Below are positions 927-36,894 of a DNA stretch of 64,000 nucleotides, in pieces. The stretch comes from Macrostomum lignano (lineage: Eukaryota), in the NCBI GenBank assembly GCA_002269645.1, contig NIVC01000530.1, forward strand, positions 124,001-188,000, given 5' to 3'. The notes beneath the pieces were generated by a model. It had not been told where the DNA came from. It did no database searches and was given only the letters and a program-made list of their open reading frames with translations. The position numbers and the translations under genes are program-made. Within the stretch, counting starts at the first letter, position 1. Each line of letters starts with the position of its first letter.

Positions 927-1219
927 TTACTTATTCATTGTTTCCTTTTGGTTAGTTCCCAATCTAATTAGTGTGCTCTATAATTATATATTTATCATCT
1001 AATGGAATCGGTGATCCCCCATCTTGTCTTCCCTGTAAATCAATAGGTTGTTGCGGTTGTGCTGGGTTGTCATGTTATTAAATTCCCTGTCGATAACTGA
1101 CTGGTTTGCTACTAGTTATACTACTGGTAATTAGTTTATTTAGTAGTATAATCTTATCTTAATTACTTGATAGAGTTGAACATGTCAATCTCAAGTTAAA
1201 TTCTGAATGGTATCATAAT

Positions 1220-1798
1220 CATTAGTGACAGCGTGAACAGTCAGTGATTACCATTAGTGACAGCGTGAACAGTCAGTGATTATCATTAGTGACAGTGTGA
1301 ACAGTCAGTGATTACCATTAGTGACAGCGTGAACAGTCAGTGATTACCATTAGTGACAGCGTGAACAGTCAGTGATTACCATTAGTGACAGCGTGAACAG
1401 TCAGTGATTATCATTAGTGACAGCGTGAACAGTCAGTGATTACCATTAGTGACAGCGTGAACAGTCAGTGATTATCATTAGTGACAGCGTGAACAGTCAG
1501 TGATTATCATTAGTGACAGCGTGAACAGTCAGTGATTACCATTAGTGACAGCGTGAACAGTCAGTGATTACCATTAGTGACAGCGTGAACAGTCAGTGAT
1601 TACCATTAGTGACAGCGTGAACAGTCAGTGATTACCATTAGTGACAGCGTGAACAGTCAGTGATTACCATTAGTGACAGCGTGAACAGTCAGTGATTACC
1701 ATTAGTGACAGCGTGAACAGTCAGTGATTACCATTAGTGACAGCGTGAACAGTCAGTGATTACCATTAGTGACAGCGTGAACAGTCAGTGATTATCAT
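1220..1798. repeat. 32-bp minisatellite (CATTAGTGACAGCGTGAACAGTCAGTGATTAC), about 18 near-identical copies
   Basis: Direct tandem units about 300 bp after the pumilio stop, probably within the 3' UTR region. Confidence 0.97.
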
Positions 1799-2664
1799 TT
1801 CTGAACTCTGAAAGGAGTTTATTAGTAATAAGAAGCGGAATTTAGCGAAATTGACTCACCATTCTACTGATTAGTAGTTGAAGCAGCCAGGAGACTTGTA
1901 GTTTGCATGCAGAAGTGGAACTCCAGCTAACCGTTTTTTACCTATGAAGTCACCTTGTATAATTAATTTCATTTTCTATCGAGTTAGTTTAGCAGCTTTA
2001 CTTATAAATTTTCAATTGTTTTGAACTTTCCTTCCTCTAATCTGTCAACATCTGTCTCTGAAGTGTTTGTCTTTGTACGCACCGGCTTGCACTATCATGT
2101 TTGTCTTGGGCACTCAACTGCTAATGCTAATTTGTTTGTTTTTTGCTGTAATTTTATTTATTTTAATATGAAGCTCCTGTTAGTAAATGCCCCCCGGCAC
2201 ATGGTGTAATTATGTATCATATTGTTTTTTTGTATAGGTATTTTAAACTGTGCGTTTTGTTGTCCTTCATTGTTTTAATTATCAGCACAATACATAGTCT
2301 AGCCTTTAACTGTGTTTGATTGAGCAAAATGAATCAGTAATTTTTGAAGCAATTTCACTCCCAAGGCAAGCATTAATGATTAATGAATGTGAATAATTGT
2401 ATTTTGTAATTCCCTGAATCATATTTATCTATTCACCTTAATTTTGTCTTATTAATACATTAACAATATAATTATCAAAATTGCATCAATTTCCTATTGT
2501 GGTGCAAGTTAATCCATTCTCGGTGCGGGACTGCTTAACGAAATCTCTTACTCGTCTGCTTGTTTTAGTGTCTTCTGCTTTTTGCTTTTTTTTGAAGCTT
2601 TTCTGCTTCCGGTGATTGTTGTTTACCGAATTAGACCTGTGTATGCTGTGTACCGTCTCACCCA

Positions 2665-4380
2665 CGAACTTATCTACCCTCTCAGTGTCTACCTTCTCAC
2701 CCACTCCCCTATCTACCCTCTCAGTGTCTACCTTCTCACCCACTCCCCTATCTACCCTCTCAGTGTCTACCTTCTCACCCACTCCCCTATCTACCCTCTC
2801 AGTGTCTACCTTCTCACCCACTCCCCTATCTACCCTCTCAGTGTCTACCTTCTCACCCACTCCCCTATCTACCCTCTGAGTGTCTACCTTATCATCCACT
2901 CCCCTGTCTATCTCAGTGTCTACCTTCTCATCCACTCCCCTGTCTATCTCAGTGTCTACCTTCTCATCCACTCCCCTGTCTATCTCAGTGTCTACCTTCT
3001 CATCCACTCCCCTGTCTATCTCAGTGTCTACCTTCTCATCCACTCCCCTGTCTATCTCAGTGTCTACCTTCTCATCCACTCCCCTATCTATCCGTTAAGT
3101 GTCTACCTTCTCATCCACTCCCCTGTCTATCTCAGTGTCTACCTTCTCATCCACTCCCCTGTCTATCTCAGTGTCTACCTTCTCATCCACTCCCCTATCT
3201 ACCCTCTCAGTGTCTACCTTCTCATCCACTCCCCTATCTACCCTCTCAGTGTCTACCTTCTCACCCACTCCCCTATCTACCCTCTCAGTGTCTACCTTCT
3301 CATCCACTCCCCTATCTACCCTCTCAGTGTCTACCTTCTCATCCACTCCCCTATCTACCCTCTCAGTGTCTACCTTCTCATCCACTCCCCTATCTACCCT
3401 CTGAGTGTCTACCTTCTCACCCACTCCCCTATCTACCCTCTGAGTGTCTACCCTCTCATCCACTCCCCTATCTACCCGTTAAGTGTCTACCTTATCATCC
3501 ACTCCCCTATCTATCTCCGTTTCTACCTTCTCATCCACTCCCCTGTCTATCTCAGTGTCTCCTTCTCATCCACTCCCCTGTCTATCTCAGTGTCTACCTT
3601 CTCATCCACTCCCCTATCTATCTCCGTTTCTACCTTCTCATCCACTCCCCTATCTATCTCCGTTTCTACCTTCTCATCCACTCCCCTGTCTATCTCAGTG
3701 TCTACCTTCTCACCCACTCCCCTATCTCACCCTCTGAGTGTCTACCTTCTCATCCACTCCCCTATCTATCTTAGTGTCTACCTTCTCATCCACTCCCCTA
3801 TCTATCTCCTTTTCTACCTTCTCATCCACTCCCCTGTCTACCCTCTGAGTGTCTACCTTCTCATCCACTCCCCTATCTATCTCCTTTTCTACCTTCTCAC
3901 CCACTCCCCTATCTCACCCTCTGAGTGTCTACCTTCTCATCCACTCCCCTATCTATCTTAGTGTCTACCTTCTCATCCACTCCCCTATCTATCTCCTTTT
4001 CTACCTTCTCATCCACTCCCCTATCTACCCGCTAAGTGTCTACCTTCTCATCCACTCCCCTATCTATCTCAGTGTCAACCTTCTCATCCACTCCCCTATC
4101 TATCTCCTTTTCTACCTTCTCATCCACTCCCCTATCTACCCGCTAAGTGTCTACCTTCTCATCCACTCCCCTATCTATCTCAGTGTCAACCTTCTCATCC
4201 ACTCCCCTATCTATCTGAGTGTCTACCTTCTCATCCACTCCCCTATCTATCTCAGTGTCTACCTTCTCATCCACTCCCCTATCTATCTGAGTGTCTACCT
4301 TCTCATCCACTCCCCTATCTATCTGAGTGTCTACCTTCTCATTCACTTCTCTATCTAAATCTCAGTGTCTACCCTCTCTA
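2665..4380. repeat. Pyrimidine-rich 36/39-bp minisatellite (CTCAGTGTCTACCTTCTCATCCACTCCCCTATCTA[CC])
   Basis: Mixed 36- and 39-bp units; source of the repetitive shadow ORFs at 2486-4358. Confidence 0.97.
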
Positions 4381-5827
4381 AGCCAGCCCCTCTACTCCCT
4401 AAGCCACTTTTTATAATTTATTCTATCACGAATCGTCACCATCAAATTTTATGCACCCCCGCTACTCTCATCCTTCGAATAAGTGAGATGATAAGAAAGC
4501 CGCAGAAAAATCTTTCAAAATCCGAAATTTAATATCCGCCCATCTGTTTTGAGCAGAACTTAAACAATTCAATTTTAGGAAGACCATGCAGCTAACAACT
4601 ATAAAAGCATTAGCCTTCCCAAGCCATGTATGGCTAAGAATATTATAGTTTGAGCGAATTTTTACCAAGCAAGCAGAACCTCATCTGTCTCCTGCTCAGG
4701 GTGGGTGAGCAGAGCGAGTTGCTTGCTCAGCTTGTTTGCTCTTCTGCCGCCGCCGCCGCCCCAGGGGGTACCACCGACGTCAGCCCCCACCCCAAACAAC
4801 ACAAACAAGGGGGGTCGGTCGCCCCCCCCCCGCTGCCGCCAACTTTCACTTTACCGCGACAATCGGCTGAGCTATGGGTGGGGGGCGTTCCTTTGTTTGC
4901 TCTCCTCCTCTCTCTCTCCCACGTTCGACGGCGACCGTGAGTGCAGGCCTAGGAATTGGGGTCCGCTCTCGCGGTTTCCTAGAATTATTCGGGCGGTAAT
5001 GGGTATTGGAGCCGGCCGCCTGCTCACTTGTTTGCCGAAGGCCTACTAGGCTCTTCAGGCCTTGCTAGCGGAGCGACATGTGATTCAACCTAGGGTAAAC
5101 CCTAACAGCGCTCACCAACCAACCAAGGCTCTGGTAAACACAAATTCTGTCGTTGCTATGACAACGAAACGAAACGGGAACGAATGAATCCAGAGAAAGT
5201 TCCTAACTGTGGGGGCCGTTGTGTTCAGCGTTGAATAAGGCTGAACGGAATAGAATGAGCAGGACTCGACGGAGAGCTGCTGAAGTATAAGCTTGAGAGA
5301 ACTCCCGGCGGAAACCGGATCCCTTGTTTGCTCGGGATTGGAGTCCGTGGCGGCAGCTTCCCAGCTGCATCATGGCCAGCTTGTGCCGCTGCTGCATGCT
5401 GCCTTATCAGTTGTTTGCTCAAGTTCTGCAGGGCCCCCGGACGGGGATGTTGGAGGCACCAGCAGCAGCAGCACAAGGCAAACACTGGGCCTCGGCTCTT
5501 CCTCGCGGCCTGACATCTTCCATCCTGCAGGAAGTGGATGGATGGATGAAGCCAAGAGGACTGACGAAGGGAGGGGGTGATGAGGAAAATGAGAATATGG
5601 GAGAGATCCATTTTTCTGTCCGGAGATCGGTTTTCTGTACGCCGATAAGTGTAAGCCGTGCAGCTCGAGTCCTAATTGAAATTTTGCAATCTGAACAAAA
5701 TTTTCGAAACCTTTTATGTGGAAATGAAGATCAGCAGAGTAAGAGATGAAGATTTACATGCAACGGCAAATTAGGGGAGAGAGAGACGGTGCAATAAAGA
5801 GGGAGGTTGCGTTGAATGAAAAATTGG

Positions 5828-7215
5828 TAGAGTGAGGGATTGGGTAGAGTGAGGGATTGGGTAGAGTGAGGGATTGAGTAGAGTGAGGGATTGGGTAGAG
5901 TGAGGGATTGGGTAGAGTGAGGGATTGGGTAGAGTGAGGGATTAGGTAGAGTGAGGGATTGGGTAGAGTGAGGGATTGGGTAGAGTGATGGATTGGGTAG
6001 AGTGAGGGATTGGGTAGAGTGATGGATTGGGTAGAGTGAGGGATTGAGTGGAGTTAGGGATTCGGTAGAGTGAGGGATTGGGTAGAGTGAAGGATTGGGT
6101 AGAGTGAGAGATTGGGTAGAGTGAGAGATTGGGTAGAGTGAGGGATTGGGTATAGAGTTGGGGACTGGGTAGAGTGAGAGATTGGGTAGAGTGAGGGATT
6201 GGGTAGAGTGGGGGATTGGGTAGAGTGAGGGATTAGGTAGAGTGAGGGATTGGGTAGAGTGAGGGATTGGGTAGAGTGAGGGATTGGGTAGAGTGAGAGA
6301 TTGGGTAGAGTGAGGGATTGGGTAGAGTGAGGGATTGAGTGGAGTGAAGGATTGGGTAGAGTGAGATATTGGGTAGAGTGAGGGATTGGGTAGAGTGAGG
6401 GATTGGGTAGAGTGAGGGATTGGGTAGAGTGAGGGATTGGGTAGAGTGAGGGATTGGGTAGAGTGAGGGATTGGGTAGAGTGAGGGATTGGGTAGAGTGA
6501 GGGATTGGGTAGAGTGGGGGATTGGGTAGAGTGAGAGATTGGGTAGAGTGATGGATTGGGTAGAGTGAGGGATTGAGTGGAGTGAAGGATTGGGTAGAGT
6601 GAGAGATTGGGTAGAGTGAGGGATTGGGTAGAGTGAGGGATTGGGTAGAGTGAGAGATTGGGTAGAGTGAGGGATTGGGTAGAGTGAGGGATTGGGTAGA
6701 GTGAGAGATTGGGTAGAGTGGGGGGATTGGGTAGAGTGAGAGATTAGGTAGAGTGAGGGATTGGGTAGAGTGAGAGATTAGGTAGAGTGGGGGATTGGGT
6801 AGAGTGAGAGATTAGGTAGAGTGAGGGATTGGGTAGAGTGAGAGATTGGGTAGAGTGAGAGTTGGGTAGAGTGAGGGATTGGGTAGAGTGAGAGATTAGG
6901 TAGAGTGAGGGATTGAGTGGAGTGAAGGATTGGGTAGAGTGAGAGATTGGGTAGAGTGAGGGATTGGGTAGAGTGAGAGATTGGGTAGAGTGAGGGATTG
7001 GGTAGAGTGAGAGATTAGGTAGAGTGAGGGATTGAGTGGAGTGAAGGATTGGGTAGAGTGAGAGATTGGGTAGAGTGAGGGATTGGGTAGAGTGAGAGAT
7101 TGGGTAGAGTGAGAGATTGGGTAGAGTGAGGGATTGGGTAGAGTGAGAGATTGGGTAGAGTGAGGGATTGGGTAGAGTGAGGGATTGGGTAGAGTGAGGG
7201 GTTGGGTAGAGTGAG
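5828..7215. repeat. 17-bp G-rich minisatellite (GAGGGATTGGGTAGAGT), about 80 copies
   Basis: Tandem units, two GGG runs per unit. Confidence 0.97.
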
Positions 7216-7896
7216 ATATGACATGTAGGTATACAGGGAAGGATAAAGGAGGAGATAAGACCTAATGATAAAGATGGAGATAATAGATAGATTTTAATGA
7301 TAAGGTAGAGGGAGAGAGGGAGAGGCAATTGAAGCCAGAGGGGTAGAGAAGTACCCGTTAGTGAGTTGAGCTGTCAAGAGTGGCACTGCGTGTAAATGGA
7401 TTGATAAAGCAATTACGAGCGTATTAAGAAATTATTAACAAGTATTACGCTACACTCCATTGCTCCACCAATTGTCTCACTTTTTGAGCCTACGAATTGC
7501 AGGCCGCATACACCGTAAGTAGGAGCTCTGCTGCAGGCTGGGACGCCAAGGCTGTTAACGGAGCTTCCCCAGATTGGCAATGCGCAAGTGTTGGGGGGTC
7601 TCGGAGGACTGAAGACTGTTGGAATTATTGCACACTTGAAATCCTGCCCCACTCGAAATGAAACATGCAGGGGGGGGGGCAGCGCAGGGCTCTTGTCTGA
7701 TATTGCTTCCACCGCCTCACGCCAAGACTGTTTGCACCAAGACGGTCTCACCCACTTCACAGCTGCAGCCGGGGTTCGACTTCTGCTAACCCCTTTTTCT
7801 TCGCGCGTTGGAGCTCTGTAGCTGTTATTTGCTGAGCTGTTTGTGGCCTGGAGATTAACCTGACCTCAGCTCATAACTGCTTTATGTATGTATGCA

Positions 7897-8390
<494 letters not shown>

Positions 8391-8999
8391 ACCGCAGCCC
8401 CCTCGCACTTGCACAGCCACCCGCTTCTCTGGCAGTCTGTCGGCGGCTCTGCTTGCAAAAGCAAGACAGCCCAAACCGAGTTGAGCTGGTCTGCAGGCGG
8501 GCGTCCCCCCCCCCCTATCCGGCGGCCCCAGCGCGCAACCCGAACAGTTGAGCAAACACAAAGGCCAGCTTGGGAATACGTGAGCACAAGCCGACTTGAG
8601 CTGCTCGTATCGCTGAGATTCGAGCTCCCCATCCATCGTTTATTCCGGGGAAGGCTGGCTGAGCAGTCGGTGGGAGCGGGGGGGGGGTCGGGTCTGTGTT
8701 TGCACTGGGACCTGCTGTTCAGACCCGATCCGGGACCTCCCATGCAGCGGCTTAGGGATTTTTGTTGGAATCTTTTAGTCCCTGATAATCGGGGCAAAAA
8801 AGTTAGCGCTGGAAGTGGACGGGCTTGCTCCAGTGTAGCTTAAATTGCCATTTTCTTGGTTTCCCGACAGGTATCATGACTGGTGCATGACGCTTATAAT
8901 CTGATAGTCCACTCTACGAGTATGACTATTTTTTGTCCATATTGTTGTCATTAACTGTTATAATTTTTTTAACATAACTTCGTGTTATTGAGAGTAGTC

Positions 9000-10692: not shown

Positions 10693-11374
10693 TTACGTGG
10701 CGATGGAACGGTACGTCACAGAGCCATCAAAAGCGCGGGGCACAATGGGGCTAGCAATGGCGCTTTGTCTCCTGTGAAACAGGCAGTGTCAGACAATACA
10801 GCGGCTACTAAAATCCATTGTAATCCATACAGCTCTGGGCTGCAAACATTATACGATTTTAATACGATCACAGAACAGTGCTTTCCTGTCCCCCTGTGCA
10901 TGCGATTCCGTTCCGCACACCACTGCTTTCTATAATCTCTCACCTTTCCACTCTCATGTGTATATAATATGGTGTGCAATAATATGTGGGGCCTCTAATA
11001 TTATTATGCATCTTGCCCATGCACTGAGGCTGTTACTGTTATACTCGCCGGTTAAGCGTGAAGTGGGCCCTTATAATCGACTCCAACTTAGCTAACTAGC
11101 TGCACACAACTGGCCTCCTAGCTCCTAGCCAGAATCACTTTGCCCGCCCCCTGTAGGAGAACTCTGTTTTTAGACAAGTGTAGGCCGATTGCAAGTTTTC
11201 TATTCATTTTGCACTGCGAGTCAGCCTACAGTTGTATAACTATGAAGGAGTCTGGACAAAGAGTTTCTGCTCCCAGTTTGTGCTTCCAGACCCCTTCTTG
11301 GCTTTTCCCAAAACCGTCTGCACATTGAGTACGATTATTATCACTGCGGAGCTATCGATATGAACTTGTCCAGG

Positions 11375-12320
11375 TCCTGTCTTTGTCTGTCCTGTCTTTG
11401 TCTGTCCTCTCTTTGTCTGTCCTGTCTTTGTCTGTCCTGTCTTTGTCTGTCCTGTCTTTGTCTGTCCTGTCTTTGTCTGTCCTGTCTTGTCTGTCCTGTC
11501 TTTGTCTGTCCTGTCTTTGTCTGTCCTGTCTTGTCTGTCCTGTCTTTGTCCTGTCTTTGTCCTGTCTTTGTCTGTCCTGTCTTTGTCTGTCCTGTCCTTG
11601 TCCTGTCTTTGTCTGTCCTGTCTTTGTCTGTCCTGTCTTTGTCCTGTCTTTGTCCTGTCTTTGTCTGTCCTGTCTTTGTCCTGTCTTTGTCCTGTCTTTG
11701 TCTGTCCTGTCTTGTCTGTCCTGTCTTTGTCTGTCCTGTCTTTGTCTGTCCTGTCTTTGTCTGTCCTGTCTTTGTCTGTCCTGTCTTTGTCTGTCCTGTC
11801 TTTGTCTGTCCTGTCTTTGTCTGTCCTGTCTTTGTCTGTCCTGTCTTTGTTTGTCCTGTCTGTCCTGTCTTTGTCTGTCCTGTCTTTGTTTGTCCTGTCT
11901 TTGTCTGTCCTGTCTTTGTTTGTCCTGTCTGTCCTGTCTTTGTCTGTCCTGTCTTTGTCTGTCCTGTCTTTGTCTGTCCTGTCTTTGTCTGTCCTGTCTT
12001 TGTCTGTCCTGTCTTGTCTCTCCTGTCTTGTCTCTCCTGTCTTGTCTCTCCTGTCTTGTCTCTCCTGTCTTGTCTCTCCTGTCTTGTCTCTCCTGTCTTG
12101 TCTCTCCTGTCTTGTCTCTCCTGTCTTGTCTCTCCTGTCTTGTCTCTCCTGTCTTGTCTCTCCTGTCTTGTCTCTCCTGTCTTGTCTCTCCTGTCTTGTC
12201 TCTCCTGGCTTGTCTCTCCTGTCTTGTCTCTCCTGTCTTGTCTCTCCTGTCTTGTCTCTCCTGGCTTGTCTCTCCTGTCTTGTCTCTCCTGTCTTGTCTT
12301 GCCTGTCCTGTCTTGTCTCT
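11375..12320. repeat. Two adjacent pyrimidine-rich arrays: 15-bp TGTCCTGTCTTTGTC followed by 14-bp TGTCTCTCCTGTCT
   Basis: Directly visible; the unit switches near 12010. Confidence 0.96.
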
Positions 12321-13234
12321 TACACATGTGTCTTGTCTGTCACTCCTTGCAGAAACCAGCTTACTACAAATCTATAACACTTGCGCAGCTCTGCTCAGTA
12401 CACAAAGTTGAAGCATAAACAAGATTAATAATTATTTCTATTTCAAAATAAGGCACGCGGCTCTCAGCTTAGGTTGGAGTCTGCTGGAGTGTTGAGGAAC
12501 TGGCTCGGGGTTCAAGTGGCCCTGGGTGGCAAGGGTTTTTTCGTTTTGGCTCAATTTTTTGAACCTGCTCAGACTCAAGAGCTGAGACAGGAGTCACCCG
12601 CAGTCCTTATATAATAAAGCATATATTCATATCATGGCTAAGCCAGATTATGATGAATTATCACAGGCAAATAACTAAAGCAGGAAGGCTGATCGACCAC
12701 AATTTATAAATAATTGATCATTGTTCACAATTCGCAGAAACTGCCGCAGTTTTCTCAGGTGGCGTGCAGTGCACATTATATAATAATGTAAAATTTTCAT
12801 TCCAATTCACTGCATTGCAGGCACTTGAGGGAATTAGTTCAAGATGATAAATGAATAGTTATGTAAAGTTGGTTTTAGTTTGAGTTCATTCTTTATACGC
12901 TTATAAATATTTATATATAAATGATAGTTCAGATGGTTAATAAATTGTAAATATAGAGAGATTTGAAATTCAAACACGCGGGTTTGCAGAAGAGCAGATA
13001 AATAAATATTTATAGGAAATAGTTTCTTAAAGAAGATAAGTAATATTAAATTCAATTTGATTTAGGCATACAGTACAGTTTACAGGGGCGACGGAATCTG
13101 TGCTTTTCGGTTACAAAATCTGAGGGCAAGCAGTCACCTGCAATTCCTGGGCTTGTCATTTTGGAGTTTATGACGTATTTGTAATTGGTGTAGATCAGTC
13201 TGTTAGAGCCATTGCTAGGGTTGGTAGAGTGTGA

Positions 13235-14460
13235 GAAAGATGAGGGAGACAGTGAGATAGATGAGGAAGATAGTGAGATAGATGAGGGAGACAGTGAGAT
13301 AGATGAGGGAGAGAGTGAGATAGATGAGAGAGAGGGTGAGATAGATGAGGGAGAGTGAGATAGATGAGGGAGAGAGTGAGATAGATGAGAGAGAGAGTGA
13401 GATAGATGAGGGAGAGAGTGAGATAGATGAGGGAGAGAATGAGATAGATGAGAGAGAGAGTGAGATAGATGAGAGAGAGTGAGATAGATGAGGGAGACAG
13501 TAAGATAGATAAGGCAGACAGTGAGATAGATGAGGAAGAGAGTGAGATAGATGAGGGAGAGAGTGAGATAGATGAGGGAGAGTGAGATAGATGAGGGAGA
13601 GAGTGAGATAGATGAGAGAGAGAGTGAGATAGATGAGAGAGAGAGTGAGATAGATGAGGGAGAGAGTGAGATAGATAAGTTTGAGTGTGAGATAGATGAG
13701 GGAAAGAGTGAGATAGATGAAGGAGAGATTGAGATAGATGAGGGAGAGAGTGAGATAGATGAGTTTGAGTGTGAGATAGATGAGGGAGAGAGTGAGATAG
13801 ATGAAGGAGAGATTGAGATAGATGAGGGAGAGAGTGAGATAGATGAGAGAGAGAGTGAGATAGATGAGGGAGAGTGAGATAGATGAAGGAGAGAGTGAGA
13901 TAGATGAGTTTGAGTGTGAGATAGATGAGGGAGAGAGTGAGATGGATGAAGGAGAGAGTGAGATAGATGAGGGAGAGAGTGAGATAGATGAGTTTGAGTG
14001 TGAGATAGATGAGGGAGAGAGTGAGATAGATGAGTTTGAGTGTGAAATAGATGAGGGAGAGAGTGAGATAGATGAGGGAGACAGTGAGATAGATGAGGGA
14101 GAGAGTGAGATAGATGAGGGAGACAGTGAGATAGATGAGGGAGAGAGTGAGATAGATGAGTTTGAGTGTGAAATAGATGAGGGAGAGAGTGAGATAGATG
14201 AGGGAGAGAGTGAGATAGATGAGGGAGAGAGTGAGATAGATGAGGGAGACAGTGAGATAGATGAGGGAGAGAGTGAGATAGATGAGTTTGAGTGTGAGAT
14301 AGATGAGGGAGAGAGTGAGATAGATGAGGGAGAGAGTGAGATAGATGAGGGAGAGAGTGAGATAGATGAGGGAGAGAGTGAGATAGATGAGGGAGAGTGT
14401 GAGATAGATGAGGGAGAGAGTGAGATAGATGAGGGAGAGAGTGAGATAGATGAGGGAAAC
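13235..14460. repeat. 21-bp purine-rich minisatellite (GAGAGTGAGATAGATGAGGGA)
   Basis: Directly visible; about 400 bp beyond the foxA stop codon. Confidence 0.96.
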
Positions 14461-14861
14461 AGTGGGATAGGGTAGGGAGTGTGTGATAGAGGGGCAGAGA
14501 GTCAGACACGTGGAGTCAGGCGGTTTTACAGTGAAAGTGCAGCCCGATAACAGGTATTTATGTACTGTACAAAAGCTACTAAAGAATTCTGCAATACTCG
14601 AATTCAAACTCATGGACAGACTCAGAGAATTCAAAGGTACAAAATACAAACAACGGACAAAAGAAAGGTCAAAAGAGCGTCAGGACAGAGAAAAAAATTT
14701 AACAGCAAAACAGGATAAGAATGCAGATAACTGTTAACTGTAAATATGGGACAAATAGGCATGACGTACCCCACACTAACAACAACAAAAGCTGTTTGTG
14801 TAGCAATGGACAGCTGGATTCTTGAAGGTGGAAACTGCATGTCCGTGGCTTATGGTGCAGC

Positions 14862-15340
14862 TTATAGCGCTCCGCCGCTATGATACTTGTAATAGTACTG
14901 ATGCTGGGCAGCTTCATCAGCCTTCAGCTGCCCGTAACCGGCTGCGGCGTAGCCAGCGGCGCTCATGTCGTTATAGTACTTCAGCTCGCCCGCATGCATC
15001 AGCGAGCTGATGGAGAACGGGTGCGAGTGATGCTGGTGATGCTGAAAATTGCCTACCAGACTCGGGTCCATGTGAGGCATCATTTCGGGAGACAGGAAGT
15101 AGCCGGACATTGACAGCGGGTCCTGCTGCTGCTGCTGCTGCTGATACTGCTGAGAGTACTGCATCTGCTGCTGCTGCTGTTGCTGATGCTGCTGAAGATC
15201 CATACCATCCATTGGATGGCTTTGCTGCTGCTGAAGGTAGTGATGCAGCTCAGTTCCGCCTTGGTGCATCGCCAGCGGCTGCTGAGACTGCTGAGGCTGC
15301 AGTGGCTGCTGCATTTGCATTTGCATGTGCTGTTGGAGCA

Positions 15341-15377
<37 letters not shown>

Positions 15378-16517
15378 AAGGCTGAGACTTGAAGAGGCTC
15401 GACTGCTGCACCGCTCGGAGATACCAGCATCCGGTTCCTCCTTCATCTTGCTGCTGTCGGCCTCGCCGTCCTCGTCGTCGTCACCGCCAGTCGCAGCCCG
15501 GTTGGCCTGCCTGGTGGCCTCCCGCTGCGGATCTTTGAAGCGCTTCTGCCTGCGCAGGTAGCAGCCGTTCTCGAACATGTTGCCGCTGTCCGGGTGCAGC
15601 GTCCAGTAGGAGCCTTTGCCCGGCTTGTCCGGGCTGCGCGGCACCTTCAGAAAGCAGTCGTTGAATGACAGCGAGTGCCTGATGGAGTTCTGCCAGCGCT
15701 GCTGGTTCTGCCTGTAGTAAGGGAACAAATCCATGATGAACTGGTAGATCTCCGCCAGGGTGCACATCTTCTGGGGCGACTGTTGAATAGCCATGGTGAT
15801 GAGGCTGATGTAGCTGTAAGGCGGTTTAGCGTGAGTGTAGCTTCGTCTGTAGGCCGCCGCCGCTGCCGCTGCGGCCGCTGCTTTGCCGCCGTCCAGACAG
15901 CCGCTCATGACTGCCGCAGCCGCTGCAGCCGCTCCCGGATGCTGCTGCTGAATCTGCTGCAGATGATGATGCTGCTGCTGCTGCGATGGATGCTGCGAAT
16001 GATGCAGCTGTTGATGCTGCTGTTGTTGCTGTTGAAGATGGTGCAGATGGTGCTGCGGCGGCTGCTGCTGCTGCTGATGCAGATGATGCGGATGCTGGAC
16101 GGCCTGATGATGCTGCAGAGCGCCGCCTCCGCCAGCTGTTGAGTCGCTCGAATAAGCGGCAGCAGCGGCAGCAGCGGCGGCAGCGCTGGCCCCGGTCGGG
16201 TAGCAGGAGACTGCAGCAGCGGCCGCGGCAGCAGCGGCAGCAGCAGCGGCAGCCGCAGCAGCCGCCGCAGAGCCCGGAGCGTTGGACATCGTTGAGGAAG
16301 TGACCCCGGCCAGCGGGTCGCTGTACAGGGCGGCAGAAGCCGACTCCGACGGCGCGGACGAAGTCGAAGCCGCTGTCGGCAGGTCGATGTCGGTACCGCT
16401 ATCGGCGTGAAGGTCGCCGCCGCCGCCGCCGCAGCCGCCGTTACTGCTGCCGTTGACGCCTGCGCCGTCGTTAGACAACGACGAGGCGGCGCCGGCGCCG
16501 CCACCGGCGCTGAGCAT
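14862..16517 (-). CDS. foxA: Forkhead box A transcription factor, single coding exon, about 551 aa
   Basis: Forkhead domain [23 protein letters not shown]...[16 protein letters not shown]...[29 protein letters not shown] is FoxA-diagnostic; C-terminal EH1-like HPFSISSLM; first ATG (MLSAGG) at 16517. Confidence 0.97.
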
Positions 16518-17324: not shown

Positions 17325-18430
17325 ACAGCTGGCTGCAATGCGCCATCCAATTTGGCGCCCTTCCCATTGTGACATAGCTGACAATGCGCCATCCAATTTG
17401 GCGCCCCTCCCATTGTGAATAGCTGACAATGCACCATCAAATTAGCGCCCCCTCCCATTGTGAATAGCTGACAATGCACCATCAAATTAGCGCCCCCTCC
17501 CATTGTGAATAGCTGACAATGCACCATCAACTTAGCGCCCCCTCCCATTGTGAATAGCTGACAATGCACCATCAAATTAGCGCCCCCTCCCATTGTGAAT
17601 AGCTGACAATGCACCATCAACTTAGCGCCCCCTCCCATTGCGAATAGCTGACAATGCACCATCAACTTAGCGCCCCCTCCCATTGTGAATAGCTGACAAT
17701 GCACCATCAACTTAGCGCCCCCTCCCATTGTGAATAGCTGACAATGCACCATCAACTTAGCGCCCCCTCCCATTGTGAATAGCTGACAATGCACCATCAA
17801 ATTAGCGCCCCCTCCAATTGTGAATAGCTGACAATGCACCATCAACTTAGCGCCCCCTCCCATTGTGAATAGCTGACAATGCACCATCAAATTAGCGCCC
17901 CTCCCATTGTGAATAGCTGACAATGCACCATCAACTTAGCGCCCCCTCCCATTGTGAATAGCTGACAATGCACCATCAACTTAGCGCCCCCTCCCATTTT
18001 GAATAGATGACAATGCACCATCAACTTAGCGCCCCCTCCCATTGTGAATAGCTGACAATGCACCATCAAATTAGCGCCCCCTCCCATTGTGAATAGCTGA
18101 CAATGCACCATCAAATTAGCGCCCCCTCCCATTGTGAATAGCTGACAATGCACCATCAACTTAGCGCCCCCTCCCATTGTGAATAGCTGACAATGCACCA
18201 TCAAATTAGCGCCCCCTCCCATTGTGAATAGCTGACAATGCACCATCAACTTAGCGCCCCCTCCCATTGTGAATAGCTGACAATGCACCATCAAATTAGC
18301 GCCCCCTCCCATTGTGAATAGCTGACAATGCACCATCAACTTAGCGCCCCCTCCCATTGTGAATAGCTGACAATGCACCATCAACTTAGCGCCCCCTCCC
18401 ATTTTGAATAGATGACAATGCGCCATTTAA
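17325..18430. repeat. 45-bp minisatellite (TGAATAGCTGACAATGCACCATCAA[A/C]TTAGCGCCCCCTCCCATTG), about 24 copies
   Basis: Period 45 confirmed (17461 to 17506); immediately upstream of the foxA promoter region. Confidence 0.97.
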
Positions 18431-19601
18431 TTCGTCGCCCCATGTCGACAAAACAACGTCATGAACATTCCTAAATAACAGAATCCAGAAACACAAAAAA
18501 CATTTTTATTTAGACAATTAAAAGCGTGCCAAGTGGGTGATTTATTTATTAATTAGCCTCCTAGTTGAATTGTATATAGATTAAATTAAATTAAAAGATT
18601 ATATTGCACTTTCCATTGCAAATTTATCAAATAAAACTCTTGTGTGTGTACTTACTCCAGAGTGCTAGACAGATGTCAGACTGGATGCCAGACTGGCTGT
18701 CGGAGGCTGTTGTTGTGAAACAGAAAATTTCAGACAGTTTTAGCTCAAAAAACCATGGCTCAGTAAATCTTCTGCGTTCAAATATTACTATTGAAAACAA
18801 GTATTGCACGAACAGTAGGATGGTACTTATATAGCTAGCAGTAGTAGTATAGATAGAGTGCAGTAAGAAAAAAGCAAAGAATTAATCGCAAAAATTGATA
18901 AATTTATCAAATAGTAAAGTAAATAAAGATGATTGAAGCAAAAGAAGGAAAATTGCCAATTTGAAGAAAACAGACAATACTTAATGCTGACACACAGAAT
19001 ACCATGTCTGATACACCTATAATAAACAACTATTAAGTATTAATTAATTAATTATTATTAAATTAAACTAGTAAAACAACAGACACTGCTGTTACTATAC
19101 GGTTTATCTATTTATAAATTAATATAGTTGCGTATAACAAAAACTGCGAGGAATGCGACCAAGTATAAAATTGAATAGAAATAATTAAGTATTTAAGCTA
19201 TGCAAAATTAGTAAAGCAAAACACTAACAATGCAAAGGAACCCAAGTAGTAAAAAGAAAAATTAAAAAATAAATACTTATTGCACCCAAATTTTCTAGAA
19301 TAGATACGCCAATGTCGCTACTGACTTGAGTATACTACACTAGTAGTAGTTGTTGCAATTTAAAAATATGACTGCAGAGAGGAAAATATAATAATGTAAG
19401 ATTTAAGTTGACAATATTTATAGTAACCATATTTATTAAATAGTAAAGTCTTTGTACGGGGACACAGCGACAGAAGTATATTTTGCGACAGACACACAAT
19501 TTCTCTTAATTAAAGTCCAATATTATTGTTAATAATAAACAATTTTTATAAGTCTTGGCTTTGCCCGAATTTTTTTCAGCTCGACAGAAGATCCAAATTT
19601 C

Positions 19602-19630
19602 TTATTTTGTAGTCATCATGGTGACGAATT
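19602..19630 (-). CDS. cam: Calmodulin distal alternative last exon (E)FVTMMTTK*
   Basis: tttgcag|AA TTC GTC ACC ATG ATG ACT ACA AAA TAA; phase 1 matches the exon 2 donor. Confidence 0.75.
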
Positions 19631-19734
19631 CTGCAAATGATACAAATAAGAGGTTATTTACGATGCATGTTTTTAACGGTGGTAATTTTTATGCAGAATT
19701 AAAATTATGCTTGAAATATTCAGGCCAGAGATCT

Positions 19735-21175
19735 TCAGCAATAGTAACTTCAGGTCAGAAATCTTCAGGGAAAAGAACTTCAGATCAGAGATCTTCAGGG
19801 AAAAGAACTTCAGGTAAGAAATCTTCAGGGAAAAGAACTTCAGATCAGAGATCTTCAGGGAAAAGAACTTCAGGTCAGAAATCTTCAGGGAAAAGAACTT
19901 CAGATCAGAGATCTTCAGGGAAAAGAACTTCAGGTAAGAAATCTTCAGGGAAAAGAACTTCAGATCAGAGATCTTCAGGGAAAAGAACTTCAGGTCAGAA
20001 ATCTTCAGGGAAAAGAACTTCAGATCAGAGATCTTCAGGGAAAAGAACTTCAGGTAAGAAATCTTCAGGGAAAAGAACTTCAGATCAGAGATCTTCAGGG
20101 AAAAGAACTTCAGGTCAGAAATCTTCAGGGAAAAGAACTTCAGATCAGAGATCTTCAGGGAAAAGAACTTCAGGTAAGAAATCTTCAGGGAAAAGAACTT
20201 CAGATCAGAGATCTTCAGGGAAAAGAACTTCAGGTAAGAAATCTTCAGGGAAAAGAACTTCAGATCAGAGATCTTCAGGGAAAAGAACTTCAGGTCAGAA
20301 ATCTTCAGGGAAAAGAACTTCAGGTCAGAAATCTTCAGGGAAAAGAACTTCAGATCAGAGATCTTCAGGGAAAAGAACTTCAGGTAAGAAATCTTCAGGG
20401 AAAAGAACTTCAGATCAGAGATCTTCAGGGAAAAGAACTTCAGGTCAGAAATCTTCAGGGAAAAGAACTTCAGATCAGAGATCTTCAGGGAAAAGAACTT
20501 CAGGTAAGAAATCTTCAGGGAAAAGAACTTCAGATCAGAGATCTTCAGGGAAAAGAACTTCAGGTCAGAAATCTTCAGGGAAAAGAACTTCAGATCAGAG
20601 ATCTTCAGGGAAAAGAACTTCAGGTAAGAAATCTTCAGGGAAAAGAACTTCAGATCAGAGATCTTCAGGGAAAAGAACTTCAGGTAAGAAATCTTCAGGG
20701 AAAAGAACTTCAGATCAGAGATCTTCAGGGAAAAGAACTTCAGGTAAGAAATCTTCAGGGAAAAGAACTTCAGATCAGAGATCTTCAGGGAAAAGAACTT
20801 CAGGTAAGAAATCTTCAGGGAAAAGAACTTCAGATCAGAGATCTTCAGGGAAAAGAACTTCAGGTCAGAAATCTTCAGGGAAAAGAACTTCAGGTCAGAA
20901 ATCTTCAGGGAAAAGAACTTCAGATCAGAGATCTTCAGGGAAAAGAACTTCAGGTAAGAAATCTTCAGGGAAAAGAACTTCAGATCAGAGATCTTCAGGG
21001 AAAAGAACTTTAGGTCAGAAATCTTCAGGGAAAAGAACTTCAGATCAGAGATCTTCAGGGAAAAGAACTTCAGGTAAGAAATCTTCAGTGAAAAGAACCT
21101 TATGTCAGAGGACTTCAGGGAAAGGAACTTCAGGTCAGAGAACTTCAGGGAAAAGAACTTCAGGTCAGAGATCTG
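19735..21175. repeat. 30-bp minisatellite with 60/120-bp higher-order alternation (AAAAGAACTTCAG[GTCAGAA/GTAAGAA/ATCAGAG]ATCTTCAGGG)
   Basis: Directly visible; lies between the two calmodulin last exons. Confidence 0.97.
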
Positions 21176-21563
21176 CAGAACTTATGAAAATTTTACTGTA
21201 CCGTATTTATCTTTTTTACCACAGCTTTGCTGACAGGTAAACTAATAAATAATGTTGAGAATTAGATACAGAAAAACGATTTAAATTTAATAAAACGATT
21301 CTACAAGAAATTTGGTAGAAATCGCGAGGCAAATAATTTCAGAACCTGAAACAATCAGTTGAAAAGAGATTAACAAAGTCATAACTGTTTCTCCAACCAA
21401 AGATTAAGTAAGCCTACCATGATTTCGAGATTCACTACCAATCATTGAAAAGATTAGGAAATTTTTAGTGTAATAAAAAACAAGTAATTAAAATTTGAAA
21501 GTCAATTAAAATTAATAATTTTAAATAAACAAAACAAATTCTCCCGTTAGCAAATTAGTGACC

Positions 21564-21592
21564 TTATTTTGTGGTCATCATTTTGACAAACT
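21564..21592 (-). CDS. cam: Calmodulin proximal last exon (E)FVKMMTTK*
   Basis: ttgcag|AG TTT GTC AAA ATG ATG ACC ACA AAA TAA; completes the phase-1 Glu codon from exon 2 and gives a 149-aa CaM. Confidence 0.88.
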
Positions 21593-21829
21593 CTGCAATT
21601 GGTAACAAAAATGTTTAAATTGACAACACCGAATATTATGTAAAAAATCGTTGCTCAATGCTAATTCAGAAAAAAACTTACTATATAAATAAGACACAAC
21701 ACAACGCGTGTAATATAAACGTTTTTAGTAAATAAAGCATTATGCTCGGATGAGTCATTAACTAATTTAATAGGAATTCGAAATAAATTACACAAATTAG
21801 GAGTTTAAAGACAATTAATTTAGGGAATC

Positions 21830-22492
21830 TCAAATCCTCAATCCTAAATAGGGGATCTGGGAGATCTCAAATCCTCAATCCTAAATAGGGGATCTGGGAG
21901 ATCTCAAATCCTCAATCCTGAATGGGGGATCTGGGAGATTTCAGATCCTCAATCCTGAATAGGGGATCTGGGAGATTTCAGATCCTCAATCCTGAATAGG
22001 GGATCTGGAATATTTTAGATCCTCAATCCTGAATAGGGGATCTGGGAGATTTCAGATCCTCAATCCTAAATAGGGGATCTGGGATATTTTAGATCCTCAA
22101 TCCTGAATAGGGGATCTGGGAGATTTCAGATCCTCAATCCTGAATAGGGGATCTGGGAGATTTCAGATCCTCAATCCTGAATAGGGGATCTGGGAGATTT
22201 CAGATCCTCAATCCTGAATAGGGGATCTGGGAGATTTCAGATCCTCAATCCTGAATAGGGGATCTGGGAGATTTCAGATCCTCAATCCTGAATAGGGGAT
22301 CTGGGAGATTTCAGATCCTCAATCCTGAATAGGGGATCTGGGAGATTTCAGATCCTCAATCCTGAATAGGGGATCTGGGAGATTTCAGATCCTCAATCCT
22401 GAATAGGGGATCTGGGAGATTTCAGATCCTCAATCCTGAATAGGGGATCTGGGAGATTTCAGATCCTCAATCCTGAATAGGGGATCTGGGAG
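21830..22492. repeat. 37-bp minisatellite in calmodulin intron 2 (GATCCTCAATCCTGAATAGGGGATCTGGGAGATTTCA)
   Basis: Period 37 confirmed (22141 to 22178). Confidence 0.97.
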
Positions 22493-22546
22493 GTTCCCTT
22501 AAAATTATTTATTTTCTATAAAAAATTATTTTTTATACTTTTTTCA

Positions 22547-22996
<450 letters not shown>

Positions 22997-24903
22997 TTAT
23001 TTGGCAATAGATTCAAATGCGTACTTAGCTCCAGAGATAGCATGGTAGCTTAATCCTGTCTGATCCCAGACTCTTTTACAACTCACATAATGCATTGTGA
23101 CTTAAAGTCGCCTCTCTATCAAATTACAGTCGTTTGACTTATGCCTAGTAAAAAATTAAAACTGCTAGCATATTGAAGTATCTGAATCAGAGTGGTCAAA
23201 ACTGTGCATTGGATTTAATGTACTTTTTCTTTCTATCATTTAGTTTATTGTGCTCATGCCATACTACTAACTATAGATAGATTTACAACAAACATCAGAT
23301 ACTTGAATATAGAATATATCTATAACCAAAGAGATTTTACCCATTTCAATTGAATCTTTGTAAAAATTTAGAAAATAATCAGAATAACTTATCAAATCTC
23401 TGTAATTAAAAAGGCATGCAAAAATAAAAAACAGGTGAAAATTATATATACAAGCTTGAGGAAATAAGTATCATCTGATTAAATACCAACAGTAAAGAAT
23501 GTTTTAATATATAAATAAATTAAATTAAATTTTGAAAGCTTTACCAAATTTGATGTTACTTACAGTAGTCTAAAATGAAGTCATATCAAATGAAATTAGA
23601 TGCAAATTAGTAAGTTACTTAACTAATTTGACTATTTATTATACAACTTAATTTATTTATCATAAACTTGAAAAGAAGTATCTTTTTAATTGTCATAGTA
23701 TAAAAACTTACAAAATTATTCTATAACATTAAAAGTATGTTATAGTCTAAATCTAAACTTGGTTTGCATTATACTTTGATCTATTTTATTATAAAAATAT
23801 TTGGTTCTAATAGATATAAGCAAAATGGCAAAAGTTTTGGCATGGGTATGGCATGGCATGGCACCAAAAGGTATGACATGGTACAGTTTTTAGGTAAATG
23901 GCAGGAGTAACTATGACTGTCTTATCTAGAGATGACCTGAAATTTTGGGCATTTTCATTGAAAATTTTTGGGTATTATTCTTTTGGGTACATTGATACCC
24001 AAAATTTCAAGCTCACTGTCTTTTATCTAAAGCTGAGCAGATCGATTGACAAACCAGCCAGGTTTAATGCATATCTCCTGCTAGATGGCTACCAATTCAA
24101 ATGCAAAACTTATATGTATGAATGCAGATTTTTTGTAACCTTTTTTGGCCAGTCTGCCTCTCCAATGGAAGGATTGCAGCCTGTTTGTAAAAATAGCCAC
24201 CCCAACCTCTGCTTGCAGGTCTTGTATTGGAGGGATGGGTGTGTTCAATGCAAATAAAACCCCAGCATGTTGGGGGTTCAATTAAATTTAATGATTTCCC
24301 CAAAATGGAGGGGGGTTGGGCTTGGGCTAAGTATATATAGCAGTTGTAACAGTAAGCAGATAGCTAGGGCTGTGCCAAGATTTAATTGGTTTTAATATCG
24401 GCGCATTTCCCTATGTATTAGCTGAGCAATGAAATTACCTTAACACTAAAGTCCAAGCTATGTACTGATAGGGGATTGACAGGATACTAGACATACCATA
24501 GTCAGAATTAGTGAATCAATCTGAATCAATCAATGGATAGTAATGTCCAATCCAGTATAGGATAGCCCCAAATGGACATTGGGGATATAGACAATGCCAA
24601 AGGAATTCCTCAATGTGTGCATCAAAGTCGAAGAGAGCATCGCTCGTGCTATGCATGTTGCAGATCTTGCACTTTGCGTGGGCCTATGTGCCCTCCATGG
24701 TGTTGGTGTGGACTGTTGGGTCTGCTGGATCTACGAAGTGCAGCCGATGGGAAATGAGAAATTGAAGCTCAAAAAACAAGCAGCTCACAAGCAACAGCTC
24801 CCTTAAACTGACACCCCCTTAAACTCTGTTCGCTCAAACTTTTGGCCATAGACACATTGCCAATTGATGTCATTTGACTCGGTGGTACAAATTCAATATG
24901 TTA

Positions 24904-25077
24904 AAATAATTTACTGAACGGAAGTGTAGGATTGCCAATAAATCTTATTCTTAAAATGGCATAATTGGTTTCCCACTTTAAGTAAATGTATATATTTAAG
25001 TAAAGTGGGAAACCAATTATGCCATTTTAAGAATAAGATTTATCGGCAATCCTACACTTCCGTTCAGTAAATTATTT
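24904..25077. mobile_element. Foldback/MITE-like hairpin: 77-bp arms with 1 mismatch and a 20-nt loop, in calmodulin intron 1
   Basis: 24904-24980 is the reverse complement of 25001-25077 apart from one difference (CCAAT vs CCGAT). Confidence 0.8.
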
Positions 25078-25426
25078 AAGACTAACTTATTTAATTATCT
25101 AGTTTTTTTCAATTTTTTTTAAAAATATAAAAGTAAAAACTAAGAAGTCAACAAGTCACAGCATATTAGTATGAAGTAGGAAAAAAAGCAGGTTGCTGAA
25201 TTGCCAATCTAGAAAATAATCCAGAATGCCAAAAACAAATCACACTATTGTATTGCTTTGATGCAATATAGGAATTATTATTAAAAACTAATTTTTAGCT
25301 TGTTTGATCTCATTAGAGAATGACTAAAATATAACTTTGTTGCTAATATTTATCCATTCAATTTTGAAATGTAGTAAGTAGTTTCTTTTTTATTTAGGCC
25401 CTAATCTCCATCAAAACATAACTTAC

Positions 25427-25429
25427 CAT
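25427..25429 (-). CDS. cam: Calmodulin initiator ATG at the end of the first coding exon
   Basis: aaaaATG|gtaagt; an intron directly after the ATG is the conserved metazoan calmodulin arrangement, and phase 0 fits exon 2. Confidence 0.8.
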
Positions 25430-28339: not shown

Positions 28340-29690
28340 GTAGTTCAGGGAAGATTACTAAGGCCAAGGGTAGATCAATGAAGATTACTAAGGGTAGATC
28401 AGTAAAGATTACTAAGGGTAGATCAGGGAAGATTACTAAGGGTAGATCAGTGAAGATTACTAAGGGTAGATCAGTGAAGATTACTAAGGGTAGTTCATGG
28501 AAGATTACTAAGGGTAGATCAGTGAAGATTACTAAGGGTAGATCAGTGAAGATTACTAAGGGTAGATCAGTGAAGATTACTAAGGGTAGATCAGTGAAGA
28601 TTACTAAGGGTAGTTCATGGAAGATTACTAAGGGTAGTTCAGTGAAGATTACTAAGGGTAGATCAGTGAAGATTACTAAGGGTAGTTCATGGAAGATTAC
28701 TAAGGGTAGATCAGTGAAGATTACTAAGGGTAGATCAGTGAAGATTACTAAGGGTAGATCAGTGAAGATTACTAAGGGTAGATCAGTGAAGATTACTAAG
28801 GGTAGTTCAGTGAAGATTACTAAGGGTAGTGCATGGAAGATTACTAAGGGTAGATCAGTGAAGATTACTAAGGGTAGATCAGTAAAGATTACTAAGGGTA
28901 GATCAGTGAAGATTACTAAGGGTAGATCAGTAAAGATTACTAAGGGTAGATCAGTGAAGATTACTAAGGGTAGTTCAGTGAAGATTACTAAGGGTAGATC
29001 AGTAAAGATTACTAAGGGTAGATCAGTGAAGATTACTAAGGGTAGATCAGTAAAGATTACTAAGGGTAGATCAGTGAAGATTACTAAGGGTAGATCAGTA
29101 AAGATTACTAAGGGTAGATCAGTGAAGATTACTAAGGGTAGTTCAGTGAAGATTACTAAGGGTAGATCAGTAAAGATTACTAAGGGTAGATCAGTGAAGA
29201 TTACTAAGGGTAGATCAGTGAAGATTACTAAGGGTAGATCAGTAAAGATTACTAAGGGTAGATCAGTGAAGATTACTAAGGGTAGATCAGTGAAGATTAC
29301 TAAGGGTAGATCAGTAAAGATTACTAAGGGTAGATCAGTAAAGATTACTAAGGGTAGATCAGGGAAGATTACTAAGGGTAGATCAGGGAAGATTACTAAA
29401 GGGTAGATCAGGGAAGATTACTAAGGGTAGATCAGTGAAGATTACTAAGGGTAGATCAGGGAAGATTACTAAGGGTAGATCAGGGAAGATTACTAAGGGT
29501 AGTTCAGGGAAGATTACTAAGGGTAGATCAGGGAAGATTACTAAGGGTAGATCAGGGAAGATTACTAAGGGTAGTTCAGGGAAGATTACTAAGGGTAGAT
29601 CAGTGAAGATTACTAAAGGTAGTTCATGGAAGATTACTAAGGGTAGATCAGTGAAGATTACTAAAGGTAGTTCATGGAAGATTACTACCA
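28340..29690. repeat. 24-bp minisatellite filling the MARCH-like intron (GAAGATTACTAAGGGTAGATCAGT)
   Basis: Directly visible, between exon boundaries 28257 and 29795. Confidence 0.97.
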
Positions 29691-30244: not shown

Positions 30245-31470
30245 AAGGACATGATTATCTTGCAGCTTCCGACACTATTATCCTGCATCCCCCCACATGA
30301 TTATCCTGCATCTCCCCCCACATGATTATCCTGCATCTCTCCCCCACATGCTTATCCTGCATCTCCCCCACATGATTATCCTGCATCTCCCCCCACATGA
30401 TTATCCTGCATCTCCCCCCACATGCTTATCCTGCATCTCTCCCCCACATGCTTATCCTGCATCTCCCCCACATGATTATCCTGCATCTCCCCCCCCCCAC
30501 ATGCTTATCCTGCATCTCTCCCCCACATGATTATCCTGCATCTCCCCCACATGATTATCCTGCATCTCCCCCCACATGCTTATCCTGCATCTCCCCCCAC
30601 ATGCTTATCCTGCATCTCCCCCCACATGCTTATCCTGCATCTCCCCCCCACATGCTTATCCTGCATCTCCCCCACATGCTTATCCTGCATCTCCCCCACA
30701 TGATTATCCTGCATCTCCCCCCACATGCTTATCCTGCATCCCCCCACATGCTTATCCTGCATCTCCCCCCACATGCTTATCCTGCATCCCCCCCCCACAT
30801 GCTTATCCTGCATCTCCCCCCCACATGCTTATCCTGCATCTCTCCCCCACATGCTTATCCTGCATCCCACCCCCACATGCTTATCCTGCATCTCCCCCCC
30901 CCACATGCTTATCCTGCATCTCCCCCCACATGCTTATCCTGCATCTCCCCCCACATGCTTATCCTGCATCTCCCCCCCACATGCTTATCCTGCATCTCCC
31001 CCCCACATGCTTATCCTGCATCTCCCCCCACATCCTTATCCTGCATCTCCCTCCCACATGCTTATCCTGCATCTCCCTCCCACATGCTTATCCTGCATCT
31101 CCCTCCCACATGCTTATCCTGCATCTCCCCCCCCACATGCTTATCCTGCATCTCTCCCCCACATGCTTATCCTGCATCCCACCCCCACATGCTTATCCTG
31201 CATCTCCCCCCCCACATGCTTATCCTGCATCTCCCCCCCACATGCTTATCCTGCATCTCCCCCCACATGCTTATCCTGCATCTCCCCCCCACATGCTTAT
31301 CCTGCATCTCCCCCCACATGCTTATCCTGCATCTCCCCCCACATGCTTATCCTGCATCTCCCCCCACATGCTTATCCTGCATCTCCCCCACATGCTTATC
31401 CTGCATCTCCCCCCCACATGCTTATCCTGCATCTCCCCCACATGCTTATCCTGCATCCCTCCCACATGAT
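30245..31470. repeat. About 24-27-bp minisatellite CATGCTTATCCTGCATCT(C)n with variable C-run, in the putative 5'UTR intron of the MARCH-like gene
   Basis: Directly visible; a candidate upstream donor (aacag|gtaaga) is at 31544/31543. Confidence 0.95.
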
Positions 31471-32454
31471 TGGTAAAAATATCAATATTAGAAATTAACT
31501 ACAAATCCAGAAATATCTGTAAAATAGAATCCAAGTTTCTTACCTGTTAAACTTGCTTGCCCCGACAGCTAAAGCAGTTCTGTTTACTGTTTAATTGTTA
31601 GCACTCGATGATATACTAGAAGAAAGTCACTGGCCTTAACAGATGAGAAGCAAAGCATTTATATTTGTGTTTAAAATATTCAAAGTGCGATAAAATTGTA
31701 AAGAGAAAGGCCTGAGTTTGGCTTCTAGCTTGTAAGCTGGTTGGGGCCAGCATATAACAGTACAATATAATAGCAGAGTGCTGGGCACAGGCACACAGGG
31801 GTCAGAGTGGGGTGGCACTACTGCCAACATTCAATGAGCACAATGACAATGTCTAGATGCCTTCTCCATTTTCATTTACCTGGCTTGGCTTGTTTAACTG
31901 GACAAACAAGCATAACAATGTACAGTAGCAGCGAGTAGCGACTGCACAGTGCCCGCATGCGCTATACACATGATGTGTAATACGGTTACAGGCAGTATAA
32001 CAGCTGACTAATAAATGCCACCCTAGAGCCTAGGCACAGGTGTATGATGTTACAGGGGTAGATTCGAAGGTATTACATTTTTAGGCGTGAACCTGCGAGT
32101 GAGAGGAAAGGGGAATGAGCGGAGGAGGGGAGAGGGGATCGGAAGAGAAAGAGAGGAGAAGGGGAGAGGGGAGGAAGATGGGTGGAGGAAGAGGGGAGGC
32201 GGAGAGGGAAGAGAAAGGCGAGAGGGGAGTAGCAGGAGAGAGGGGAAGAAGAGGGGGAGAGGGGAGGAACAGGTCTCGCGAGAATTGAGCATTTCCTCGA
32301 GAACCCAACTGTGTACTATATATACTAAACTAAAGCTTACAATGTATGTAATGAGAACATATATATATATATATACAATGCTCAAAATAAAAATAAAATT
32401 ACAATAGCTTGCTATGTCAGAATAGATACATGTGTAGATACATGTGTATGTTTT

Positions 32455-35797: not shown

Positions 35798-35849
35798 CTG
35801 AAGTTAATAAGTGTTAATAAGGATGTTCTGTTGGGACTGTTGGTGTCTG

Positions 35850-36845: not shown

Positions 36846-36894
36846 ATAGAGACACAATTACCCCGTCCACCGACAAAAGCAGCCAGAACCGCAC

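Follow-up and report, generated by a model that had tools for sequence, protein, structure and literature searches.

Calmodulin is among the most conserved of eukaryotic proteins, and the locus described here raises the question of whether a single calmodulin gene can encode two slightly different proteins through a choice between two last exons. Our analysis covered a window of 64,000 nucleotides (64 kb) of contig NIVC01000530.1 in NCBI assembly GCA_002269645.1, where the contig position equals the window position plus 124000; NIVC00000000 is the Mlig_3_7 assembly of Macrostomum lignano (PMC5730564). All positions given below are those of the window. The reading that we favor, with a probability of roughly 0.55, is that an old duplication event placed two copies of the terminal exon in tandem, and that these would now serve as alternative last exons, each with a poly(A) hexamer.

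The calmodulin gene and its two terminal coding exons

On the minus strand of the window we identified one canonical calmodulin gene with two homologous 29-nt terminal coding exons, referred to here as 3a (proximal) and 3b (distal). An earlier note on this DNA had described two intact, homologous, in-phase 29-nt terminal exons in one calmodulin locus, about 1.96 kb apart; all of its coordinates were right, its assignment of acceptors, phase and stop codons was confirmed, and the starts of the two exons lie 1962 nt from each other. The features of the gene are as follows, with a slash marking the borders between exons and introns.

25427..25429, minus strand: ATG start codon, with which exon 1 ends; the donor gtaagt comes next (aaaaATG/gtaagt), the first intron is in phase 0, and the gene model on record starts here
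22982..25426, minus strand: intron 1, 2445 nt, which holds a 174-nt palindrome
22564..22981, minus strand: exon 2, 418 nt, codons 2-140 and the first base of codon 141, with acceptor cgctcag/GCT and donor GAAG/gtgagt
21593..22563, minus strand: intron from exon 2 to exon 3a, 971 nt, mostly 37-nt minisatellite
21823-22492: 37-nt minisatellite, 18 copies, within the intron from exon 2 to exon 3a
21593..21609, minus strand: TTTGTTACCAATTGCAG, the exon 3a acceptor region, which shares homology with that of 3b; the 47-nt blastn block discussed below begins here
21564..21592, minus strand: proximal terminal coding exon 3a, 29 nt, aattgcag/AG TTT GTC AAA ATG ATG ACC ACA AAA TAA, translated as EFVKMMTTK and stop
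21286..21291, minus strand: ATTAAA, candidate proximal poly(A) signal, 272 nt past the 3a stop, with a T-rich stretch after it
19719..21178, minus strand: 60-nt minisatellite, 24 copies, 96% matches, lying between the two terminal exons
19631..19646, minus strand: acceptor region of exon 3b, TTTGTATCATTTGCAG
19602..19630, minus strand: distal terminal coding exon 3b, 29 nt, catttgcag/AA TTC GTC ACC ATG ATG ACT ACA AAA TAA, translated as EFVTMMTTK and stop
19432..19437, minus strand: AATAAA, candidate distal poly(A) signal, 164 nt past the 3b stop

Both acceptors read TTGCAG, both exons are in phase 1 and both end in TAA, while the pyrimidines in the acceptors, by our own count, amount to 11/16 for 3a and 12/16 for 3b. 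A separate 3' splice site, stop codon and poly(A) hexamer can be assigned to each terminal exon, the hexamers being consensus matches only, and the ATTAAA at 21286..21291 is the only hexamer of canonical type between exon 3a and the 60-nt minisatellite. Unique sequence continues for 385 nt after exon 3a before this minisatellite begins, and 88 nt separate the end of the array from the start of exon 3b.

Joining the ATG, exon 2 and either terminal exon gives an ORF of 450 nt, encoding 149 amino acids and a stop, with the ending FVKMMTTK (3a) or FVTMMTTK (3b). Exon 2 encodes residues 2-140, which match canonical invertebrate calmodulin at 100% identity (tblastn); four Pfam EF-hand_1 matches are found in each isoform, and solved calmodulin structures match both products at full length, over residues 1-149, with an E value of about 1e-91. 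The gene structure is also that of a calmodulin gene: the first intron directly follows the start codon, and the last one, in phase 1, precedes a terminal exon with 29 coding nt. Calmodulin genes of other animals contain internal introns; these are absent from exon 2, and the first and last introns are retained. Such a structure may have arisen by partial intron loss via a cDNA intermediate, and exon choice might explain why the last intron was spared while the internal ones were lost.

With regard to codon usage, exon 2 has a GC3 of 84% and encodes Lys by AAG six times and by AAA once, and the short last exons, with AAA, ACA, TTT and GAA, have a GC3 of 56%. The palindrome in intron 1 (24904-25077) is near-perfect, consists of two 87-nt arms that are 95% complementary and have no spacer between them, and is hairpin- or MITE-like.

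About 3 kb downstream of the calmodulin gene and on the same strand lies a FoxA-type forkhead gene (14862-16517, minus strand), a single exon whose 551-aa product contains long poly-Q, poly-A and poly-H tracts. Its forkhead domain reaches 93% identity with matches that include chiton, brachiopod and octopus FoxA (local blastp ranking), and in the rest of the protein no similarity to database proteins could be detected. Elsewhere in the window, positions 471-926 (plus strand) encode the C-terminal PUF repeats of a Pumilio homologue, and 36799-37401 and 43088-43651 (minus strand) are exons of a retinoblastoma-family gene (RB_B domain; DUF3452/Rb N-terminal domain). Homogeneous minisatellites with units of 45, 60 and 37 nt and 96-97% matches are found at 17332-18426, 19719-21178 and 21823-22492, respectively, and others are visible as repetitive ORFs at about 2486-4358, 6744-8797, 11341-12418, 13052-14649, 28378-29406, 30397-31498 and 35814-36389. 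The minisatellites occupy introns and intergenic DNA, consistent with the content of 15% simple and tandem repeats reported for M. lignano.

Homology, constraint and the residue at position 144

Exons 3a and 3b are identical at 24 of 29 nucleotides. Three of the five differences are single synonymous substitutions and the other two distinguish AAA from ACC, giving K in 3a and T in 3b at residue 144, so that the claim of several synonymous differences and one residue change was accurate. The homology is limited to 47 nt, made up of the 17-nt acceptor region, the 29-nt exon and one more base (83% identity, E = 4e-8); outside this block, the flanks of 3a and 3b contain no alignable sequence according to sensitive blastn and MAFFT, which also delimited the block. 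Homology that is confined to the acceptor and the exon fits an old duplication of which only the functional core survives, although rapid minisatellite turnover in the M. lignano genome could be another cause of the loss of homology in the flanks.

Over the two strands of the 64 kb together, a degenerate pattern for the terminal exon matched at exactly two places, 3a and 3b, where 0.00-0.05 matches were expected from dinucleotide shuffles. We also considered whether exon 3b might be part of a second or decayed gene copy, the case in which the earlier note would have been wrong, and this was ruled out: tblastn found no further calmodulin exon and no exon-2 remnant in the 64-kb window, and since the window lacks a second calmodulin exon 2, the distal exon is not the tail of a second gene copy.

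The question of constraint was addressed in two ways. For five random substitutions, the probability that the stop is retained and no more than one residue changes is 0.003-0.005. When one copy was taken as neutral and the other as accepting synonymous changes only, with five differences in total, the neutral copy retained its AG and its stop and had no more than one residue changed in 1.3% of simulations. These values, in a test that rests on 29 nt and five differences, suggest that selection has acted on both copies of the terminal exon; the earlier view that both are under selection is in this respect supported at a suggestive level (P about 0.013), within the limits of a 29-nt exon.

Position 144 had been described as variable among calmodulins, and Q, T and K all occur there across the database matches. 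T is the common protostome residue (FVTMMTSK), Q is found in vertebrates, and K is found in corals and Aplysia as well as in two endings, FVKMMMSK and the plant-type FVKVMMAK. Because T is the common residue in protostomes, the distal exon 3b is probably of the ancestral type. The presence of K in other species indicates that K at 144 is tolerated in nature, and as both residues occur naturally elsewhere, the difference between K and T may be nearly neutral.

In the mechanism that we propose, an ancient tandem duplication would have copied the ancestral 29-nt terminal coding exon along with its 3' splice site, and both copies have remained intact. Splicing from the exon 2 donor at 22564 to the proximal acceptor at 21592, with cleavage after ATTAAA (about 21290), would produce CaM-K144 with a short 3' UTR, while skipping of the proximal acceptor and poly(A) site would connect exon 2 to the acceptor at 19630 and, with cleavage after the AATAAA at 19437, produce CaM-T144 with a different 3' UTR. 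Since the two acceptors are alike, both in the TTGCAG and in their similar pyrimidine content, a proximal site that was never used would be surprising. Both of these hexamers would be used and the choice of exon may be regulated, and the benefit may come from the differing 3' UTRs no less than from the K/T difference.

Transcript record and competing explanations

The gene model on record for the contig has a CDS of 25429..19602 and a 149-aa product; its coordinates correspond to 1089..6916 of locus L001, which is the reverse complement of window positions 4862-26517. As the model starts at the ATG, ends at the 3b stop and comprises 149 codons, the succession of exon 1, exon 2 and exon 3b is its sole fit. 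The collection holding this model stores one product per gene, and the source of the model is the GenBank annotation or another gene caller. The GenBank annotation of Mlig_3_7 is based on genome-guided RNA-seq assemblies (StringTie/TACO), with transcript boundaries taken from trans-splicing and experimentally defined poly(A)-site data; alternative transcripts with identical CDS were dropped, and transcripts separated by repetitive gaps as long as 10 kb were merged (PMC5730564). Through the gene model, exon 3b has indirect transcript-based support, while the splicing-in of exon 3a is predicted from the conservation of the exon. The proposal of the earlier note, one locus making two isoforms by alternative terminal exons, is accordingly borne out in its anatomy, has indirect support for the 3b product, and holds as a prediction from conservation for 3a.

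Neither spliced junction, exon 2-3a or exon 2-3b, had a match among metagenome contigs. An exact look-up of the two 149-aa isoforms among 15 billion proteins found neither, an outcome that carries no weight because the FoxA protein of the window was likewise missing from a search with itself; the genomic exon-2 ORF, begun with ATG or GTG, was not on record either. A homology search with the K isoform and a second search with a profile built from the two C-termini listed 240 proteins. FVKMMTTK terminates none of them, FVTMMTTK terminates a single one (P0028, UniParc UPI0006140DD1), and only four have the ending MMTTK; the TTK ending is rare. P0028 is identical to the T isoform with an N-terminal extension of 96 aa that resembles a translated GC-rich 5' UTR; the extension is not encoded within the 64-kb window, and P0028 lies on no contig on record. 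M. lignano also has two calmodulin-named UniRef entries, P0009 with 241 aa and P0364 with 506 aa. The calmodulin-like part of P0009 stops at NYEEF, where the last exon would start, and is succeeded by another EF-hand protein; this entry resembles a fusion of adjacent calmodulin-like genes and suggests that gene predictors easily miss the short terminal exon.

Of the competing explanations, the one that survives best, although we consider it unlikely, is that only exon 3b is functional and that 3a is an unused, skipped pseudo-exon, intact by chance or through a duplication younger than the flanks suggest. The sole gene model on record uses 3b, which also holds the T typical of protostome calmodulins, and the hexamer after 3a is only ATTAAA, a weaker variant, and not AATAAA; yet the acceptor of 3a equals the distal one in quality and, at a distance of 971 nt from the donor, ought to be used. 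An exon this short could have stayed intact under neutrality (P about 0.013), but 3a has kept its AG, frame and stop, with one amino-acid change in five differences. As for the flanks, minisatellite turnover in this genome could quickly erase their homology, whereas the limits of the homology block coincide precisely with those of the functional unit, which speaks against a pseudo-exon.

Proximal 3' splice sites usually win, and this general tendency favors the opposite explanation, in which 3a is the main or constitutive exon and 3b is either rare, arising through read-through, or present in the model as an artefact of transcript merging or homology-guided gene calling. The merging of transcripts across repetitive gaps in the annotation pipeline would point the same way, but merging alone would leave the stop in 3a, and a 149-aa CDS that ends exactly at 19602 requires a true exon 2-3b junction. 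With 3b itself intact and followed by a canonical AATAAA, we regard this explanation as improbable.

Least credible, and in our judgment very improbable, is an assembly artefact in which two paralogous or allelic loci of the partly duplicated DV1 genome, one of K type and one of T type, were joined within the minisatellite: it would need the same 60-nt satellite 3' of 3a in one locus and in intron 2 of the other, where intron 2 here carries the 37-nt satellite, the flanks of 3a and 3b are unrelated and not allelic, and the 1.5-kb array is short relative to the long reads that we take to underlie this assembly. What speaks for it is the 1.46 kb of minisatellite between the two exons and a DV1 assembly that is highly redundant and repeat-rich (PMC5730564).

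Alternative last exons are the reading that we retain. A fuller version of it, which we put forward tentatively and at somewhat less than even odds, is that this one locus yields K144 and T144 calmodulins with different 3' UTRs through regulated exon choice, and that the arrangement is perhaps shared by other flatworms, whose "gene pairs" (SmCaM1/2, Smp_026560.1/.2) would possibly be isoforms of a single locus. If true, it would be the first case known to us of canonical calmodulin coding diversity generated by alternative splicing, and a compact natural experiment on whether selection acts on residue 144 of the C-lobe, on the 3' UTRs (mRNA localisation, stability, translation) or on both. Working transgenesis and an RNA-seq-based annotation are available for M. 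lignano (PMC5730564), which makes the question of exon choice directly testable. Since the change is a single substitution at a naturally variable position, its wider impact would be moderate.

Comparison with known systems

The acceptor of the last exon has the same position in the CaM/CaM-like genes of Mytilus and Aplysia as in M. lignano, and vertebrate calmodulin genes have the same 29-nt last coding exon and phase-1 intron position. The 29-nt last coding exon and the position of its intron appear to be ancestral. The Mytilus and Aplysia loci consist of clusters of separate CaM/CaM-like genes with one last exon each, and no tandem alternative exons were found in them.

Calmodulin diversity in animals is ascribed in the literature to separate genes (PMC6171432), in agreement with the earlier note. 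Those of sea urchin, ascidian and amphioxus, SmCaM1/2 of Schistosoma mansoni and CaM A-D of abalone are described as separate genes (PMC6171432, PMC3968167), and for abalone CaM alternative splicing was tested and rejected by the authors (PMC6171432). The view of Halocynthia CaM A/B as splice variants was not supported, the two being cited as two genes (PMC6171432). The S. mansoni calmodulin has been cited as transcript model Smp_026560.2 (PMC4438872), a label suggestive of multiple transcripts from a single S. mansoni gene. These multi-calmodulin invertebrates resemble M. lignano in having near-identical isoforms with few residue and UTR differences (PMC6171432, PMC3968167), but the isoforms are reported from separate genes there and would come from one locus in M. 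lignano.

The vertebrate genes CALM1/2/3 are similar to the M. lignano locus in that several mRNAs with different 3' UTRs encode the same or nearly the same calmodulin. They differ from it in being separate genes, whereas in M. lignano the diversity would arise at one locus by the choice of terminal exon, and in encoding an identical protein, whereas the M. lignano proteins would differ at residue 144. In the literature we found no description of canonical calmodulin coding isoforms made via alternative last exons.

Alternative last exons that arise by tandem exon duplication, that is, homologous alternative exons, are a known mechanism. The M. lignano exons conform to it in having the same length and phase and one shared donor, with an acceptor, a stop and a poly(A) hexamer for each; they depart from it in that the duplicated unit, with its 29 coding nt, is extremely short and alters only one residue, and in that the use of both exons is predicted. 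The locus would be a new example of this known mechanism in an unusually conserved gene.
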